Shown here: piece after piece, positions 30,176-39,525 of the stretch | How the letters are laid out: each line of letters starts with the position of its first letter | How positions within the stretch are numbered: the first letter of the stretch is position 1 | NCBI RefSeq assembly: GCF_000315625.1 | Contig: NW_005434653.1 | Coordinates: 353,745-417,744, forward strand | Direction of reading: 5' to 3' | DNA length: 64,000 nucleotides | From: Guillardia theta CCMP2712 | Taxonomy: Eukaryota; Protista; Cryptophyta | Position numbers and translations under genes: made by a program | The notes under the pieces: generated by a model | What the model saw: only the letters and a program-made list of their open reading frames with translations | Database searches by the model: none | What the model was told of the DNA's origin: nothing

Positions 30176-33100
30176 TCATATGGTGTACACACTTCCACCA
30201 TAGGTGGGATCTGGTGGCGTACCGCACTGCACAAATCACATCAGCTACAACCAGAAGAAAGAGAAGGAAGAGGAGGAGGAGGAGGAGAAGATGGGAGGGT
30301 AGACATGGGCGTACCTTGGGGCACTTTGGCCAGGAGGCGTTAACGGGGTGCTTGCACCCCACACAGCATAGCCATCCAGGGGGGAGTAAGCTGAAGGGAG
30401 CAAGTCAGCAGCCACCCCAACCAAGAGTCTCTACCTTGCGATGTCAGCGATCGAGAACGTGTCGAGGGGGGAGGCCTCCTGCAGCATCAACTCATTCCTC
30501 GTCAAGGAATCGCACAGAGGATCAGACACCTGCTGGGCAGCTTCGCCTGCCTCTGAGTCCGGCGTCTTGGGCTCGTCAGGAGCGGCCTCGAGCTCTTTCT
30601 CGTTGGTTCCGTCGGGCTCCTCCAGCTGAGTCTTGGCCGCAGCCTCTGGTCCTCTGCTGCTGTAAGACATGGCAGGCTTCTCCTCCTTCTCCTCCTCCTT
30701 GGGTTTCTCCTCCGCCTTCTCTGGCTGTTGCATAGCTGCTGGTTCGCTGGGCAACGCCTCTGCTTGCACGGAGATCTCCACGTCCTCCTTCGACTCTTGA
30801 ACCTTCTTCGACTCCTCTTGCTTCGTCGGCTGGACCTCAGAGGGAGGAGCTTGCGACTGCTGCCTCACAGTCTGACTCTCTGCCTGGTACACTCCCCCGC
30901 CCGATGCCGAGGTCGTCATCGTCGTCTTGGGCCCTCCTGCTGGAAGGGCCCTGGTTTGAGAGGGCCTCGGCCGATCTCTCTCCTTGGCCTTTCTTTCCTC
31001 CTCCCTCTTCTTCGCCTCGTTCTCTTCCTCCAGCTTCTTCTTTTGCTGGCGCTCCTTGTAGTCGTAGTAGTAGATGCCAAACATGCCGACGACGACGAGC
31101 ACGCAGATGACGATGACGACCGTCACGGTTGGGTTGTTCGAGCTGCTCTGCTCAACTGCACCAGGTGGAGCAGGAGGGGCGGGAGTGGTGGTCGTGATGG
31201 CGATGGTTTGGTTGCTGACGTTGGAGACCGTGACACTTCGCAGAGGCGTCGCAAGGACCGTGTACAAGGAGAAGGACGACGTCTGCGCTTGGACGACTCC
31301 TTGCACGAAGTTGACGGGGGTGGAGCTGCTGGCTGAGTACGCCTTGGGGACCCAGGAGTTGGTGGAGGTGTTGAAGACGAACACGTTGAGCTGAGAGTTG
31401 CCGTAGTCGACGCGGTTGTCAAACGGGATGGAGATAGAGACGGGCGTTGAGAAGATGATTCCAGAAGGCTCGAGGTAGATTCCCTGCCCTGCTATCTTCT
31501 TCTGGTCCTTCAAGGCGCTGCCAGTGACTACAAGGTTCGATGAGAAGTTGACCAGGTTGATCTTCACAGGACGAGTCTCTCCAGCGGGCCAGGCCCCGGG
31601 GGGGAAAGTGATGGACATGTTGGTGGAGGCGAAGAGGTAGGAGGTCGACCGGCTCCGATTGGGTGGTGGGAATGCTTGCGAAGAGATAATCTGGAGGGCC
31701 CCTGACGGCAGCTGAATTCCCGCACTGCTGGAGTTCGTGGTGTCCAGCACGTACCCAGCTGGGCAGGTGACCTGGACTGTTTCCCCAAGGGTGAAGGTGG
31801 ACATGAAGTTGAGGCCTTGCGAGTTTGCTGTGGTGAAGTCGAAGACATCCAGCAAGTCACCGCACGTGACTCCCGAGCACTTGACCGGGGCCGGGGACAG
31901 GCTGCAGTCATCCATGCAGCGGGAGGTTCTAGTCGCTCCGTTCTGGCTGACGTAACCGAAGGAGCAGGAGGATTTGACGTACTCCCCGTACGTCACCCTG
32001 CTGACGGCCTGCATGGCGTCATTGCTGAAAGTCGTCCCGGGCGCCTCAAGGCTGCACGTGACGTTCCTGGTGCAGGGGCCCTGAGAGTCGTAAGGGATGT
32101 TCGTTCCCGTGTACATCCACACCCATCTCGAGCTGTTCCACTGGCAGGTCAAGCTCCACCCTTTGCTGCAAGACGAGGCTGCTGAGTTGAACGGAAGTTT
32201 CCCAGCTCCGCACGTGCCGTATGCTCGGTCACTGTTGGGTGTTGACGTCACCGTGGAGTCCGGCCACTCACGGAGGGGGCCACAGGCATTCTTGCGGACG
32301 CACACGTACTGACGAGCCCCCCAGCTGCATGGGCTAGACGAGCTGCCGCACGTGATGGGGTAGAAGGAGCTGTAGCTTGAGCTGCACGTGCACGAGCTGC
32401 TCGACGCCGGTTGTTGAAGAGCTTGCAGCTTGCGCCGAGCTGCCTTCCCAGCAGGATTAGCTTGGTTTGTCTGCTGGCAAGGGCAATGGGCAACGTAGCC
32501 TTGATCACAATTGACCAATACGCTGCTCCCGTACTCCACGCTCTTGGTTCCGTCATGTGCAACGATGGTTCCGTTGGCCAGCTGCACCCGGGTGAGATCC
32601 AACGATCCGTTGACCAACGTCATGCCCGTGAGGGAGCTGGGGGGAGGGCAGGTGGCAGGAACACACTTGAGTTGGTCGACGAGTGAAAACTGCCGAGAGG
32701 GCAGGCATTGAGGGTAAAAGACGTTGACGCACTTGTTGTACAAGGGCCCAGAAACAATGAAACCAGGCAAGCAGGTTATCTTGATGGTGTCGAGCAGCGG
32801 GACGAGCACAGGGTTGAAGTTGGCGTTAGCAAACGAGATGTTCAGCCCCTTGGTTGCGTCACAGGCAGCGACAACACAAGTCGCTGCGTTCTCCAGCTGA
32901 CAGGACGCGTTGCATGTGGGAGCGATCGACTTGGACGAATCCAATATGTTGTAACCTGATTCACATCGGATGCTGACGGTAGATTGATACGGGACAACAC
33001 CAGAGCTGGGTAGGTAGGATGTGCCGTAAGAAAGAGGAACTTGACATGTGACGGGAACGCATCTTGGAGCTGAGAACTTACCGTCGTCTTGACACATAGC

Positions 33101-36100
33101 AACGCCGCTGTTGCTGCAGCTCTGAGACGATTCCACCCTGAAGCCGGGCGCGCAGGTGAACTCGACCACGTCACCGTAAGAGTACATCATGTTGGGGATG
33201 GAAGAGTCCTTGACAGTGTTGTTCAGCTTCTGGAAGAGTCCGCAAGAGACTTTGTGGCACAACGAAGAAGATGACAAGGGGCAGTTGGTTGCTGAGCAGG
33301 AAACCGCGACAGACCGTGACGCGGCAGGCGAGCACTGACTCTTGCTGCACAAGGGACTGTTCCCTTGACTGTCTGCTCGGTACCCAGGCTGACAGGAGAA
33401 GAAAGAGGTTTGGCCGATCGGAACATACTGAACGCCTGATGAAGAAGGCAAGCCGGGGATGGCACTAAAATTTAGTGCGCAGGCCAAGGGTGCGCAGTGC
33501 ATGGCATGAACAGCCTGACAGTCCGAGCAACTGATGGTGTACGATCGCTGGTTAGAACTGCTGCAGTCTGCGAACTGTTTCGATGTCTCCACAGCCGCGT
33601 ACCCACTGAGGCAAGTGATCTGCTTGCTCCCAGTGAAGGAGGTCGACCCCGTGAACGACGGGCTGCCGAACATGTCCTGGTACAAGCAGCTCTGATTCGC
33701 ATCAACAACGGCGCAGTCTGCAACTTGAGGCCAAGAGCCGTCTGCAAAGCAACTCACGTGCGATGACACAGTCTGGCATGTCTGCTGGGGCACATGATAG
33801 TTCGACTGGCATGTGTAGAACGCTTTCTGACCAAACACATAAGATGTTGAGTTCGACGTCGAGAACTTGGGAGGTGAGAAGGCCTGACAAGCTATCGGTT
33901 GACACAAGCCCGAGATGGGTGGGTAGTAACCTGAGTCGGTACATTGAACCACACCCATCGCTGAAGAACTTTGACTGACAAAGCTGTAGCCCGGTTTGCA
34001 TTCAATAGTCACATTGCTACCATACGGCATTTGCAATTGATTGATATAACTGAATTTCTGATCATACACTTTGTAGAAATTTGGGTATAGTGAAATGTTA
34101 ATCAGCGGACACTGAGCAAGTTGGCAGGCAGGCAATCTCGTCGTATTCCAGGTGCAATCGTGGCAAACAAGAGTTGCTTCATTAGGACGAAGAATGTCTG
34201 AGGTCCCGAAACGATAGCCAGCTTTACACTTAGCTGCAATCTGTGCGAATCCAGTGGAAGTTGAGACTCGCAGCGGAAACGAAACACCGAAGGAAAGATT
34301 GAAGTTCTGATCCTGAACATGAAGAGCAGAGCAATATTGCGGGATGCAAGACACAGAGGGCTGATAAGACATTCCCGCTCCCGACGAAAACTGGAGTTGA
34401 CCATTCAGACAGAGAGCTTGGAAGGTCTGAGAGCTGCAGTTGCTGTTCCTGGTGAGATTGTTTTGGAATCCATTGGCGCATGACAGAGTTGAGTTCTGAC
34501 CATGAACCAGGTACTGTGAGGATGCCTGGAGGTTCGAGAGCGTCGGCAGGTTGCACTTGATCGGCTTGCACTGCTGGGTGGCTTCAAAGTTGCAGTTTGA
34601 GCTACATCGGACCTGATAATACATCGGGTCCGAGATCAAGGCAAAGCTGGAGGAGCTGGAAGCAGCTCTGTATCCGTGATTGCATTGGATGGTGAGAGAA
34701 GAAGAGTAGGTTGCGAAGGACGAGGAGTTGATCACGTTTCCATTCAGATCACTTTGCTGGGTCCACCAACACCGAAATGGCTTACAAGAAGTATTCATCG
34801 TCTGAAAGTTGCAGTACCTGCAGTTGAGGGTGAAGTTGTTGGGTTCGATACACGACGAGTATTGAGAGTAGATGGATGACGCCCTGTAGCCATTCATGCA
34901 CGTGACAGTCACGGAGGAACCGCTGGCCACATACTGCAAACCAGTATCAACAATGTTCTTGGACACGTTCTGAGGGCTCGGGCAAGTTTCCATTCCGCAC
35001 GTGTCGTTCTTCAAACCGCAGCCGACAATGGGCTCGCAGGCGGGAACTTGTTGGGATACATAGGCGCCATGACTCCAGTACAGCAGATAACCCTCGAAGC
35101 AGCGAGCTCTCATCACGGACGTGCAAGGTGAAAGGTAAGTGCTCTGACTGCCTGCAAGCCGATACCCAGGCTGACATGTCCAGTTGACGTTCTGACCAAA
35201 CACAACAGGGCCAGAAAATCCAGCATTTGCATTTGCAATATTTGGAACAGAACATACGACAGGTTGACAAGCCGTGCCCAAACTTGATTTGATGCCGCAG
35301 TTGTCCAGACAGGTGGCAGAGTAAGATGTGGAATCATTCAAAAGAGAGTACATGTTGCTGCTCGCCCGATATCCTTTGTTGCAAGAAACCATGATGCTGG
35401 CGTTGTATGCATAGGCATTCTTGGCGACATATCCGTTCGCATCCACCAAGTTTGATGCCTGGCACTGAATTGGCTGACATGACTGCTGAGAGTTCGGGTC
35501 CAAAGTGCAGTATCGACAAGAGCGAGAGAAGTTGCGCGGAAAGCTACAAATGTTCTGAGGAGTCGCAGTGGGAGTGGCAGCTCTGTATCCCATCTCACAC
35601 ACAACAGTTTGATTGCTACCGCTCGGAGTGTTGGTGTTCTGCACGATTTCTCCTGCTCGAGTGCTAGAGGGACAACTCTCACTGCCACAAACATCATTCA
35701 TACTACCGCAATTCATCGGCACACATGAGACGTTCACGAGGACTTTCGGGTTCTGCGTCTGATTCGTGTCTAGATACACGAATTTGCCATCTTCGCACTT
35801 TGCATAGAAGACACTGCTGCAAGCGTGATTGAATGAACTGGGAGAGTCTGATCTTCGATATCCTGGGGAACAAGTGATCTTGATGGCAGGATCGGCAGAG
35901 GTGTATTGGCTGTACTGGAGGTCGAGCTGAGAATTGGCAGGCTGAACAAAAGCTGGGCAGGCAACTGGATTGCAACCAGCAGGTATAGTTTTCTGGTACC
36001 CAAACTCGTTTGATGGTGAGCCGCACGAGACATTGTAACTCGATGGGTTGGCCGAGCTCACTCCCCTGCCAAGAAGTCAGCAGATGAGGAGCTAGAAGAC

Positions 36101-38766
36101 CACAGGTCACCTGCTTCCCGAAGGGATGGGAGCTGCCCTGTAGCCTGATTTACAGGAGACAGTAGCGACGGCTCCGTAGAGCAACGGTGAGGCTCCCGCC
36201 ACGTACTCAGTCGAAGCCGGCACGAAGTTACAAGCTATCTTCTTGCAGGTCTTGGTGGAGTACCAACGGCAACCGGAGCAAGTCCGGGTGTACTGCTTTG
36301 AGGAGGCATTGCAAGGGATCGACGGATTTTGACAACCATAAGCGTCTCCAACATCAGCAGCGATGTATCCGGTGTTGCATGCGAGAGTGATCTGACTGCC
36401 TTGGTTCTTAGCAACATCTTGGCTCACTGGCTTTGCGTTGAGATCTTCCGGTACATACGTTCCATTTTGTACTGAGTATGGCCCGCACAGAAAGGAGACT
36501 TGTTGGCAAGCGTAGGAAGTCTGCGCTGGAATGTAATCCGAAGTAATAGTGAACATCAATCCACTTGACAAAGCCGTTGCGAAGGATCTTCTGACCATCA
36601 CATAATCTGCAAATAGTGTCATCCGAAAAAGTTGTCAATGTCAGGGTTGATACCACTACAGCTTGACTGGAGTGATACATTAGTGCAATATGCCCCTGTT
36701 GCAATGATCGTCTGGTTTTCACCATCTACCATGATATGCAAGCCAACGTATGCAGCAGGGTTGGGCAAATTTTCAAGGGTAAAGGCTGATTGATTAATGA
36801 CTTGTTTCAATTTCCCTTGTAGAACATTGAAGCGCTGGATTGGATTGCAATTCGACAAAAATGAACTCTGGCAAGAAGACCACGAAGTCGATTTGCCCTA
36901 ATTCAAAAGTCAAACAGGTAATCTACACTTTCGACAGCTGAACCTGGAGAGCGTAACCAACATCACAGCTCACTTGGATTGCCTTGTCAAAGTAGGTGAA
37001 AGAGACATTCACATTAGAATTCGGAGCTGGAGTAAAAGCACTGCATTGATTCGCTACAGCGCAAGTGTCAGCATTCAAATCTGTGCATCTTTCAAGCGCA
37101 ACTCACGAGAGCATTGTGCAACATTTTCTGTATATTGGCAAGTAGTGCTACATTTCATGGAGGCTGATACTGCACCATTCACCGAATAACCTGCAAGAAC
37201 GCGGTGAATTGTGAGATTACCAAAAAGCCGGACGTACCAGTGTTGCATGTCTTTTCAACGATTGCTCCATAGTTTACCGAAGAATTTGTAGAAACTTTTG
37301 CAACCACAGCACCTGATTGGAATCAATTCCCACTTCGCATACAATCACTCAGGGAGATTGACCTGGAACAGGGCAGATGGTCGCATTGGTACATTTCAAA
37401 GAGTTGGAGTTTAGATCATATGGCGGACACGTCACAGGCACACATTGATCCTTACAAAGCGCGTGAGAAGAAACTTGAGGCCTGCAGCGTCACCTGCAAC
37501 TGCCATGTGCCTGACTCAGAGCAGAAGGCCGAGATCGAGGTTGAGCAAGGAAGATTGAATGTGGGGCTAGAAGAAGCGGCTCGGAACCCCTCCAAACAAT
37601 TCACTTGTCTTGTGTCTCCATACTGTCCTTGAGAAATCCCTGCTGTATTTAGAGGAATGCTCATCGGACAAACCTTACCTGCAAAACCAAAAGCGTGAGG
37701 AGTATGGCATCGTTAGTTATGAAAGCTATCAGATAGAATTCTTACGATTGCATGTCAGCGAATGACTCCAAGAACAATTTTGTAGACAAGTTACAGTCTG
37801 TTCTCCACCGGACAATTGGTATCCAGGAAGACACTGTACTTGCAGAGTGTCTCCCGTTCTGGCTTGAGATATCTGGTTTGATCCAGTGCTTGTTGTGAGT
37901 GAGATCTTTGCATTCAGTACCGAATACGGTCCACAAGTTTGCGGAACACATCTTCTCCACTGCGTAGAACTGACACTGCTTGCGAACGTTCCAGCTGTTC
38001 CAGCAGGGTTCATCCAACAGGTGGCAGTAAAACTGTTTGCAGGACAAAAATGAGAGAAACTTGAGCTTGTTTCAACCGGTGTGAGAGCATTTTTGATATG
38101 TATTTCCCAATTCTGAGTTGTCTCATTGCAGACGCACAATAATTCTGAAGAAGGTATGTTGGTTGTACTATCCAAGTGTAGACGTCTTTGGAACACACCA
38201 TCTTGAAATAGGACGATTTCCGAATGCAAAATAGCCTCACGAATGTCTACATGATCATTTAGCAAAGCCATCTTGCTTCTAATTGCGTCAAAATTGTGAT
38301 GCACGAATTCCAGCAAAGAGTGCTTTGCGAAGTCCTGTACCGCATTTAAGCCCAAAAGTGTTCCGACGGGTTGGCAAGTGCAAATTTGTCCTGTTGCCAC
38401 AGGTTGAGAACTATTAGAGGAAGAAGAGTTTGAAAGCGACGAATTGTGGAAAGATGAGGTATTGGACGTTCCATTCTTCGAGCTATAGTTCATACCCATA
38501 TGAACTGTGAGAACGGATACAAGAGCAACGTAAGCAAACAGATATCATTAGTTCAATTTGTCACCTGTTTGCAGCAATCTTCTTCTTGGCTTGGAATTAT
38601 CTGAAAACGCAGGAGGAATTGAGAACGTCAATTTACTAGAGGACACATTTGTATCCGATCCTTGGGTACTCACGTAGACAGCTAAGGCCGCACATGAGAC
38701 AACAGCAGCTGCAACAATAAAAAATGATCTGGGATAGATCATTGGCGTTTGAGCCAAAGCAGGCAT
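30176..38766 (-). CDS. Giant single-pass cell-surface protein: N-terminal hydrophobic segment, many sushi/CCP-like repeats, ZU5-like domain, TM helix, charged tail, C-terminal Zn ribbon
   Basis: A 1876-aa ORF plus upstream exons carry repeated C-x-(P)GY...C...C-x-P-x-x-C units. Other segments: GIYLEPSGIIFSTPVSISIPF...TSSFSLYTVL; TM VTVVIVICVLVVVGMFGIYYY; spliced tail WLCCVGCKHPVNASWPKCPK/CGTPP...VYTI*. Confidence 0.88.
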
Positions 38767-39525
38767 CTCAGTTTAGTACTTCAAAGAAAGATCTGTTCTC
38801 AGCAACCCATCGCAAGACTGTCCCGTTCACTCCTCTGCATTCCTTCAGATCGACTCGACTACTGCAATGTGTCCCCTTCCAGGAATCACCACTGAACTAC
38901 CAACTACAACGTTGGGTAGATGATTCCTTAACGTTCAGAGAGGACCCAGTCCTAGGAGGAGCGGGAGGAGGAGCGTACTACAGCCCTAGCTCGCGGAAGC
39001 CTGGCAAGCTAGATCCTGGGGGAGGAGGACGGGTGTATTGACTATAGAACCAGGCCACCCTGGGGTCATACCATCAATGCAGCATCATAGTCAATATCAT
39101 TGAGAGCAGCTCAAAGAGAACTTGACTAAATCACTTATTAGGCACAGAGGATCATCCAAGGGAACATAATGAGACCCATGACGGTAGGGGTCCATTTACA
39201 ACGAGGGGTCCTATTGCCTTACATAAGGGGTGATAATATCATGAAATTTAACTTGCAAGGGTGGGTACTCGCTTCCATTTCTTTCGGGCCACCCACAAGT
39301 GAGGCTAATTTGGGTGGGCGACGTAGACCACCCCTGCTCCTGCCCTTTTCGCCACTACCGTAGTACCCTACTTATCACCCTCCATCAATGTGGGGTAGGT
39401 GGCCCGAGGACTCCGGGAAGGCCAGCTACCGGCGCTCAGTACTACCCGGTTATTAGCCGCCCCGCTTGCTGAATTGCAGGGGTGGGGGGTACGGTAAATT
39501 CATTTTACTACAGTTAAAGCTTGTT

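Follow-up and report, generated by a model that had tools for sequence, protein, structure and literature searches.

A sushi-array surface protein of Guillardia theta with a membrane-proximal ZU5 domain and a predicted self-cleavage site

The window examined here is a stretch of 64,000 nucleotides from the cryptophyte Guillardia theta CCMP2712 (assembly GCF_000315625.1, contig NW_005434653.1, positions 353,745 to 417,744 of the forward strand), and all positions below are counted from its first letter. On its minus strand it carries one expressed gene of 12 exons, the product of which is a surface protein combining a long array of sushi modules with a ZU5 domain. The coding region (30176-38766) runs from an ATG at 38766 to a stop codon at 30176-30178 and, with the exons joined in a local script, gives a frame of 2,666 codons plus stop that is open throughout; the limits drawn in an earlier note on this DNA coincide exactly with this spliced frame. 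Before splicing, the minus strand of the locus shows one open reading frame (ORF) of 1,876 codons (30431-36061) with shorter frames upstream of it. Searches and structure predictions were run exon by exon, and the joined model of 2,666 residues was used for checking the frame and for residue numbering.

Logan transcript contigs from three runs were aligned to positions 35900-38900 of the window, and two RNA contigs from different studies, X1 (8,804 nt) and X2 (8,237 nt), were each found to span this region. All nine joints in these contigs are of the GT..AG type when read on the minus strand (CT..AC on the plus strand), and the nine introns that they confirm are tiny, at 43-67 nt each. The transcript contigs, from ordinary cultures, had word depths of 194 and 20; no reads of the raw RNA-Seq run X13 were placed on the same region, with about 6% of that run read. 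The nine 5' introns therefore rest on RNA, and the two 3' introns on canonical splice sites together with the C-termini of orthologues. The 1,876-codon frame runs at its 3' end into a canonical donor (AAG|GTAGAG), and the two exons placed beyond it, of 76 nt and, for the terminal one, 51 nt, are flanked by GT..AG and match, at nearly every residue, the C-termini of the Rhodomonas orthologue and of a metagenomic relative.

Exon 1 (38565-38766; RNA joint 38504/38565) contains the ATG at 38766 and encodes a predicted signal peptide (38665-38766, residues 1 to about 34), a hydrophobic N-terminus with which the Rhodomonas protein P0102 begins alike. Exon 2 (37746-38504, set by RNA joints) encodes about 180 residues with no family match and then the first sushi module (37759-37920; Pfam Sushi E 1.9e-08). 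The first part of this exon, following the signal peptide (37950-38502), has Asn/Ser-rich runs and is mostly absent from the Rhodomonas orthologue. RNA joints likewise set exons 3 to 9. A sushi module is encoded by exon 3 (37494-37678; Pfam Sushi E 0.0035; 45% identity to Rhodomonas P0002 by tblastn), and tblastn also recovered exon 4 (37363-37450; matched to P0002), exon 6 (37107-37190) and exon 7 (36944-37053), the last of which holds part of a sushi module. Exon 5 (37238-37312; 75 nt, in frame, joints 37188/37236 and 37310/37361) was missed by the homology search and found only in the transcript contigs. Exon 8 (36654-36897; 66% identity to Hanusia P0001) starts a conserved insert that is not of sushi type, and exon 9 (36111-36606) completes it and adds two sushi modules (two Pfam stretches). 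This insert of about 100 residues (36400-36897) is 66-73% identical in Hanusia, is also present in Rhodomonas and has no Pfam match. Exon 10 (30435-36065; 5' joint 36064/36110) is the main exon, of 5.6 kb, and encodes further sushi modules, the ZU5 domain, the stalk, the transmembrane (TM) helix and most of the cytosolic tail. The gene is completed by exon 11 (30315-30390; GT..AG on both sides), with the first half of a four-cysteine motif (LLPPGWLCCVGC...CPK), and exon 12 (30176-30226), with the last Cys of CxxC-x10-CxxC, the residues PPDPTY and the stop. Exon 11 is 81% identical to the C-terminus of P0002; the relative P0003 has the same motif and ends as exon 12 does.

The sushi (complement control protein, CCP) array extends, introns included, over 31742-37920. 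The main exon scored 117.2 bits (E 4e-34) with Pfam Sushi (PF00084), for which the cut-off is 20.7; a count exon by exon, at E<=10, gave 18 stretches, of which the main exon holds 14, exon 9 two, and exons 3 and 2 one each. By the hallmark C-x2-G-[YF] the count rises to about 23 units, with 154 Cys in the full model. The array reported in the earlier note was thus recovered, but its count of two dozen or more was slightly too high. The modules are divergent, many being without the canonical Trp, with 6 significant singly and several atypical; in the last unit, which continues directly into the ZU5 domain, there are just two Cys. Within the array there is also an insert of about 150 residues, rich in Cys and Trp and not of sushi type (32042-32488), which is recognisable in Rhodomonas P0002 and has no family match.

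Between the ZU5 domain and the membrane lies a stalk rich in Thr, Pro and Ser with N-glycosylation sequons (31130-31243), followed by the TM helix (31061-31129, ORF residues 1645-1667) and a Lys/Arg-rich stop-transfer sequence. This helix was the sole segment over threshold in a hydropathy scan, in agreement with the single helix and cytosolic tail described earlier. In the main-exon frame 106 of the 108 Cys lie N-terminal to it, and 37 N-glycosylation sequons lie upstream of it. Because the product has a signal peptide, Cys and sequons upstream of a single helix, and Lys/Arg directly after that helix, it is, as far as these sequence features tell, a type I surface glycoprotein with the sushi array outside. 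The architecture as a whole (signal peptide, sushi array, ZU5 domain, stalk, TM helix and tail) we regard as close to certain.

Profile searches and modelling firmly identify the membrane-proximal module (31244-31690; full-length residues about 2206-2355) as a true ZU5 beta-sandwich, some 45 residues outside the membrane helix. The Pfam ZU5 profile (PF00791, cut-off 21) gave 19.0 bits within the long ORF and 23.8 bits for the excised domain, the Rhodomonas orthologue had a likewise marginal match at the equivalent place, and four G. theta paralogues scored 25.7-26.3 bits. An exhaustive profile search returned 98 relatives at E<=1e-3, and relatives and paralogues were combined in a 64-row alignment. 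Against the PDB, a profile of three sequences gave only a marginal ankyrin ZU5 match (E 0.09); the 64-row profile matched the ZU5 chains of ankyrin-2 (2.3e-12), ZO-1 (1.4e-10), ankyrin-1 and UNC5B (1.3e-3), and gave no match at the sequence level to NLRP1 or CARD8. AlphaFold2, run on the 64-row alignment, returned a model with pLDDT 94.5 and pTM 0.89, containing one short helix and no Cys. The top 17 Foldseek matches of this model were all ZU5 domains, with GAIN domains and the ZU5 domains of NLRP1 and CARD8 next. With VIA-align, Z was 14.3 for ankyrin ZU5 (root-mean-square deviation 2.6-2.8 over 146-147 residues), 10-11.6 for GAIN subdomain B of CD97 and BAI3, and 8.7-9.7 for the ZU5 domains of NLRP1 and CARD8. 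The ZU5-like module that had been proposed for 31250-31640 is thus predicted to fold as one. Two other identities were considered and rejected. The module has neither the helical subdomain A of a GAIN domain nor its GPS disulfides and H-L|T/S motif, its similarity being to subdomain B only, and a FIIND (ZU5-UPA) does not fit the 38-residue Thr/Pro stalk and TM helix that follow the last strand.

The TSSFSLYTVL string of the earlier note is present near the end of the ZU5 domain (31268-31279 and onward), and its S-F-S (31268-31276), placed before the last strand, keeps the S-F|S motif of human NLRP1 and CARD8. By DSSP of the model, S-F-S (model residues 147-149) forms a two-residue turn between strands 140-147 and 150-157, so that the strand after the predicted scissile bond, S2345-F2346|S2347, is SLYTVLATP. 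Human NLRP1 is represented in cleaved form by 6x6a_B, an N-terminal fragment that ends at residue 1212; it aligned with the model up to residue 148, the Phe, as did the cleaved fragment of the rat NLRP1 FIIND and five cleaved GAIN chains (Gpr126, GPR97, latrophilin-1, latrophilin-3 and GPR56). As the cleaved chains of both kinds end at this Phe, the known scissile bonds fall on F2346|S2347. In CARD8, which is cleaved at S-F|S, cleavage depends on the Phe and on the second Ser, whereas the first Ser, in the position of the His and likened to His862 of Nup98, is nearly dispensable (PMC3210808). The earlier note had counted the replacement of His by Ser against cleavage; the Ser is indeed present, but it speaks for this reading and not against it, because both NLRP1 and CARD8 have been shown to be cut at S-F|S (PMC11202080).

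The motif x-F-S-x-[YF] was kept in 71 of the 82 relatives whose match reaches the site (44 SFS, 20 HFS, 4 TFS, 2 RFS and 1 YFS), and in the 64-row alignment its Phe, Ser and Tyr are each at least 90% conserved. At least eight other, paralogous G. theta loci have the canonical HFS in the same column, and in these too a Ser/Thr/Pro stalk leads to a TM helix. From the model and the conserved motif we think it on balance probable that the ZU5 domain cuts its own chain at the predicted bond F2346|S2347.

The closest homologue of the protein is a transcript product of Hanusia phi (65-72% identity), and full-length or near full-length sushi-ZU5-TM proteins were found in Hanusia phi, Rhodomonas salina and Teleaulax amphioxeia; the homologue survey called for in the earlier note thus extends the layout to three further cryptophytes. 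The Rhodomonas salina orthologue, of 2,551 residues, has a signal peptide and the same four-cysteine end, and is 33% identical to the Guillardia protein overall. Among 20 relatives that were looked up, the only named taxa were Rhodomonas, Hanusia and Teleaulax, the rest being mostly metagenome proteins; one short relative labelled as from an archaeal metagenome-assembled genome was treated as a mis-binned eukaryotic piece. In the G. theta genome at least 11 sister loci carry the ZU5 module. A TM helix lies within 120 residues of the motif in 30 of the 39 complete SFS-type relatives, and the median distance from motif to helix, over all motif types, is 35 residues. Of the HFS relatives in the library, 17 of 20 are without a TM helix within that range of 120 residues, and most of these 17 end about 120 residues past the motif. 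Those without a helix resemble, from their sequences, surface proteins of bacteria that share a sorting domain at the C-terminus; P0059, P0063, P0065, P0079, P0087 and others are HFS proteins of this kind, ending 106-137 residues after T-H-F-S-[IL]-Y-Q.

The cytosolic part of the G. theta protein comprises about 250 residues in all. Its first portion (30435-31060) is charged and of low complexity, with short motifs common to the orthologues, such as SPLDxFSIxDIA, and the whole tail ends in LLPPGW-x-C-C-x2-C-x10-C-x2-C-G-x-PP, an ending that is kept in Rhodomonas and in a metagenomic relative, with CxxC-x10-CxxC conserved across three lineages. No Pfam family matched the G. theta exon with this motif, the single Pfam match at the Rhodomonas C-terminus was Zn_ribbon_3 at E 0.4, and AlphaFold on a two-row alignment gave helices at low confidence (pLDDT 65). 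Of the zinc ribbon proposed earlier, the conserved four-cysteine pattern with zinc-ribbon spacing therefore stands; the fold is not claimed, because Pfam was negative and the low-confidence model was helical. The C-terminal end is thus, by its residue pattern, a conserved Cys4 motif with zinc-ribbon spacing that is placed in no known family. A related ending, W-x2-C-x2-C-x2-P-[VI]-x3-W-x2-C-P-x-C, closes three other G. theta frames (L014, L015 and L016, on contigs C50, C28 and C89 of genome G000), and the Cys4 ending has the look of an unnamed module common to the cytosolic tails of G. theta receptors. In one of these three the ending closes a frame of 2,100 codons that also has a TM-like stretch.

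Compared with known systems, the ZU5 domains of ankyrin, ZO-1 and UNC5 are the closest by profile (E 2e-12 to 1e-3) and by structure, sharing a G-P-x-G-x-x-F-x-x-P-V core, but they are cytosolic, non-cleaving scaffolds, and in ankyrin a Pro replaces the predicted nucleophile Ser. The FIIND ZU5 domains of NLRP1 and CARD8 have the same fold and the same S-F|S in the turn before the last strand, and their product of two non-covalently joined fragments would, by analogy, be expected for the G. theta protein; they are, however, cytosolic, are followed by UPA and CARD and serve the inflammasome, whereas the G. theta domain is extracellular and followed by a stalk and a TM helix. The GAIN/GPS of adhesion G-protein-coupled receptors (GPCRs) and polycystin-1 shares with it an extracellular, membrane-proximal position below a long adhesive ectodomain, the same beta-sandwich, a scissile bond at the same structural position and self-cleavage (predicted in G. 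theta). In contrast, the G. theta protein is without subdomain A, the GPS disulfides and H-L|T, and has one TM helix in place of seven or eleven. Mucins with a SEA domain (MUC1 type) carry a giant glycosylated ectodomain on a single-pass stub via a self-cleaved membrane-proximal domain that serves as a mechanical break point; the design logic is alike, but the alpha/beta SEA fold and its G|SVVV motif are unrelated. CR1, CSMD and selectins have a long CCP array on a single-pass anchor, as here, but are not known to have a ZU5 or other self-cleaving module beside the membrane.

To our knowledge, all characterised eukaryotic ZU5 domains are cytosolic, and the proteins in which a ZU5 domain has been shown to cleave itself, among them NLRP1, CARD8 and PIDD1, are likewise all cytosolic. 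The label animal-style, used in the earlier note, fits the sushi array but not the extracellular ZU5 domain, which is closer to the usage predicted for bacterial surface proteins (PMC3482391) because the characterised ZU5 domains of animals are all cytosolic. A literature search found no description of an extracellular membrane-proximal ZU5 domain in a eukaryotic type I receptor, nor of sushi-ZU5 proteins in algae, and the combination, as had been surmised, appears to be without a characterised precedent. Among bacteria, large surface proteins and polymorphic toxins have been predicted to contain ZU5 autopeptidases (Zhang et al. 2012, PMC3482391; PMC3417536), which the HFS relatives without a TM helix resemble, and ZU5, GPS and the Nup98 autopeptidase have been united in one superfamily (Zhang et al. 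2012, PMC3482391). These bacterial proteins resemble the G. theta protein in having an extracellular ZU5 domain in a large adhesin-like chain, and differ in being bacterial, in that the domain is not membrane-proximal in a type I protein, and in that their function is itself predicted.

Taken together, the explanation that we favour, with somewhat better than an even chance of being right as a whole, is that a self-cleaving ZU5 domain holds the sushi rod on a membrane stub, making a releasable receptor. The rod of about 18-23 modules would be the binding part. The ZU5 domain would cut the chain constitutively between Phe2346 and Ser2347 by an N-to-O acyl shift, a mechanism modelled on NLRP1, CARD8, PIDD1 and Nup98 and on the related GPS of adhesion GPCRs. 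Because the cut would fall in a tight turn before the last strand, the SLYTVLATP strand would remain part of the sandwich, and through it the huge outer fragment would be kept on the stub without a covalent bond. Under a pulling force, or on engaging a ligand, the outer fragment could then come off and leave the stub with a newly exposed N-terminus, and the cytosolic tail of the stub, with its Cys4 motif, might pass the event on or direct trafficking. The proposal of the earlier note that the protein is a candidate receptor is supported; whether its role is one of adhesion or recognition we regard as evenly balanced.

Several observations weigh against self-cleavage and would be explained if the same architecture contained a non-cleaving ZU5 domain that served, in the manner of ankyrin, UNC5 or ZO-1, as a rigid membrane-proximal spacer or for binding, with F-S-x-Y conserved for folding only. 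The best structural match, the ankyrin ZU5 domain, is not autoproteolytic and yet retains the Phe and Tyr of the motif, aligned as D-F-P-x-Y; conservation of the motif must therefore be partly structural. CARD8 cleavage needs His252, His270 and Glu279 (PMC3210808), whereas no His, Glu or acidic column is conserved in the 64-row alignment and a conserved general base is thus not visible there. The motif is lost in 11 of the 82 relatives, which are presumably still functional; burial of the Phe and backbone strain at the predicted cut are assumptions; and Pfam gave no FIIND or UPA match, there being no UPA after the ZU5 domain. Nevertheless, the Ser, which is Pro in ankyrin, is at least 90% conserved in these ZU5 relatives, which, the TFS, RFS and YFS of the tally above aside, alternate only between SFS and HFS, the two motifs known to cleave, and the site lies before the last strand and beside the membrane, the position of the GAIN domain. 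On this evidence we consider a non-cleaving domain possible, though unlikely.

The protein might also, cleaved or not, be mainly structural, as an anchor or component of the periplast surface coat or of a protective mucin-like layer, and not a signalling receptor that recognises cells, prey or gametes. Cryptophytes do have surface glycoproteins of high molecular mass, the steady expression in ordinary cultures (word depths as above) would suit such a role, and so would the paralogues in which the same ZU5-TM module bears Ser/Thr-rich mucin-like repeats. However, the short motifs of the tail and the Cys4 module are conserved from Guillardia to Rhodomonas, which argues for specific cytosolic partners, and other members of the family have other tail domains, such as the helicase-associated (HA) domain of Hanusia P0025, so that a purely structural role seems rather doubtful to us. 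Both readings presuppose a single gene. The earlier note had allowed that the exons might belong to separate genes, and the locus could in principle be an assembly or contaminant artefact; nothing in favour of either was found, beyond the fact that the RNA alignment covers the 5' half of the gene and the last two introns were placed by inference, a point that also counts against the full-length model. The 8.2- and 8.8-kb RNA contigs, however, each splice all nine 5' introns, the spliced frame stays open over 2,666 codons, and orthologous transcripts are collinear with it over the whole length between the first sushi module and the C-terminal Cys4 motif, which makes separate genes or an artefact highly improbable.

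Self-cleaving membrane-proximal domains of the GAIN and SEA types are central to force sensing by the adhesion receptors and mucins of animals. What is new here is the sushi array joined to an S-F-S ZU5 domain in a GAIN- or SEA-like membrane-proximal position, the autoproteolytic type of ZU5 being already known; a ZU5 counterpart would thus be used outside the cell, at the membrane and beneath an animal-like sushi rod, in a unicellular alga. If the predicted cut is real, the protein would offer a tractable non-animal model for receptors that cleave, hold and shed, and would supply a link that has been missing from the proposal that ZU5 and GPS domains share an origin. More speculatively, and in our view improbable as yet, the cassette of ZU5 domain, stalk, TM helix and Cys4 tail could serve cryptophytes, and perhaps further marine protists, as a general platform for receptors, in which varied ectodomains (sushi rods, mucin repeats) on a self-cleaving ZU5 domain would report force or ligand by shedding, with the exposed SLYTVL-type strand or the Cys4 tail carrying the signal. 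Were that so, it would be a eukaryotic extracellular ZU5 intermediate between the bacterial ZU5 autopeptidases, the GAIN/GPS of animals and the cytosolic ZU5 domains of NLRP1 and PIDD1.

The ZU5 module occurs with a range of other domains among its relatives. In P0053, fn3, Calx-beta and DUF4215 are found on the same ZU5 module, in Hanusia P0025 the SFS-ZU5-TM module is followed by the HA domain by Pfam, and P0010 combines the SFS-ZU5-TM module with a cytosolic stretch that is SH3-like by eye. Three near-identical paralogues, L003, L005 and L007, lie on contig C146 of genome G000 at about 78-139 kb, with Ser/Thr-rich mucin-like repeats, a DUF4215 Cys-rich repeat, an EGF-like region, a ZU5 domain with the canonical D-H-F-S-G-F and a Pro/Gly-rich spacer; between this spacer and the TM helix they have an extra module of about 100 residues, SEA-like by eye. 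A second sushi-array gene was also seen in the G. theta genome (L002; G000 C186:66416-69817), the frame of which takes in the beginning of a ZU5-like domain (E 7e-15 with the ZU5 profile) and then breaks, probably at an intron.

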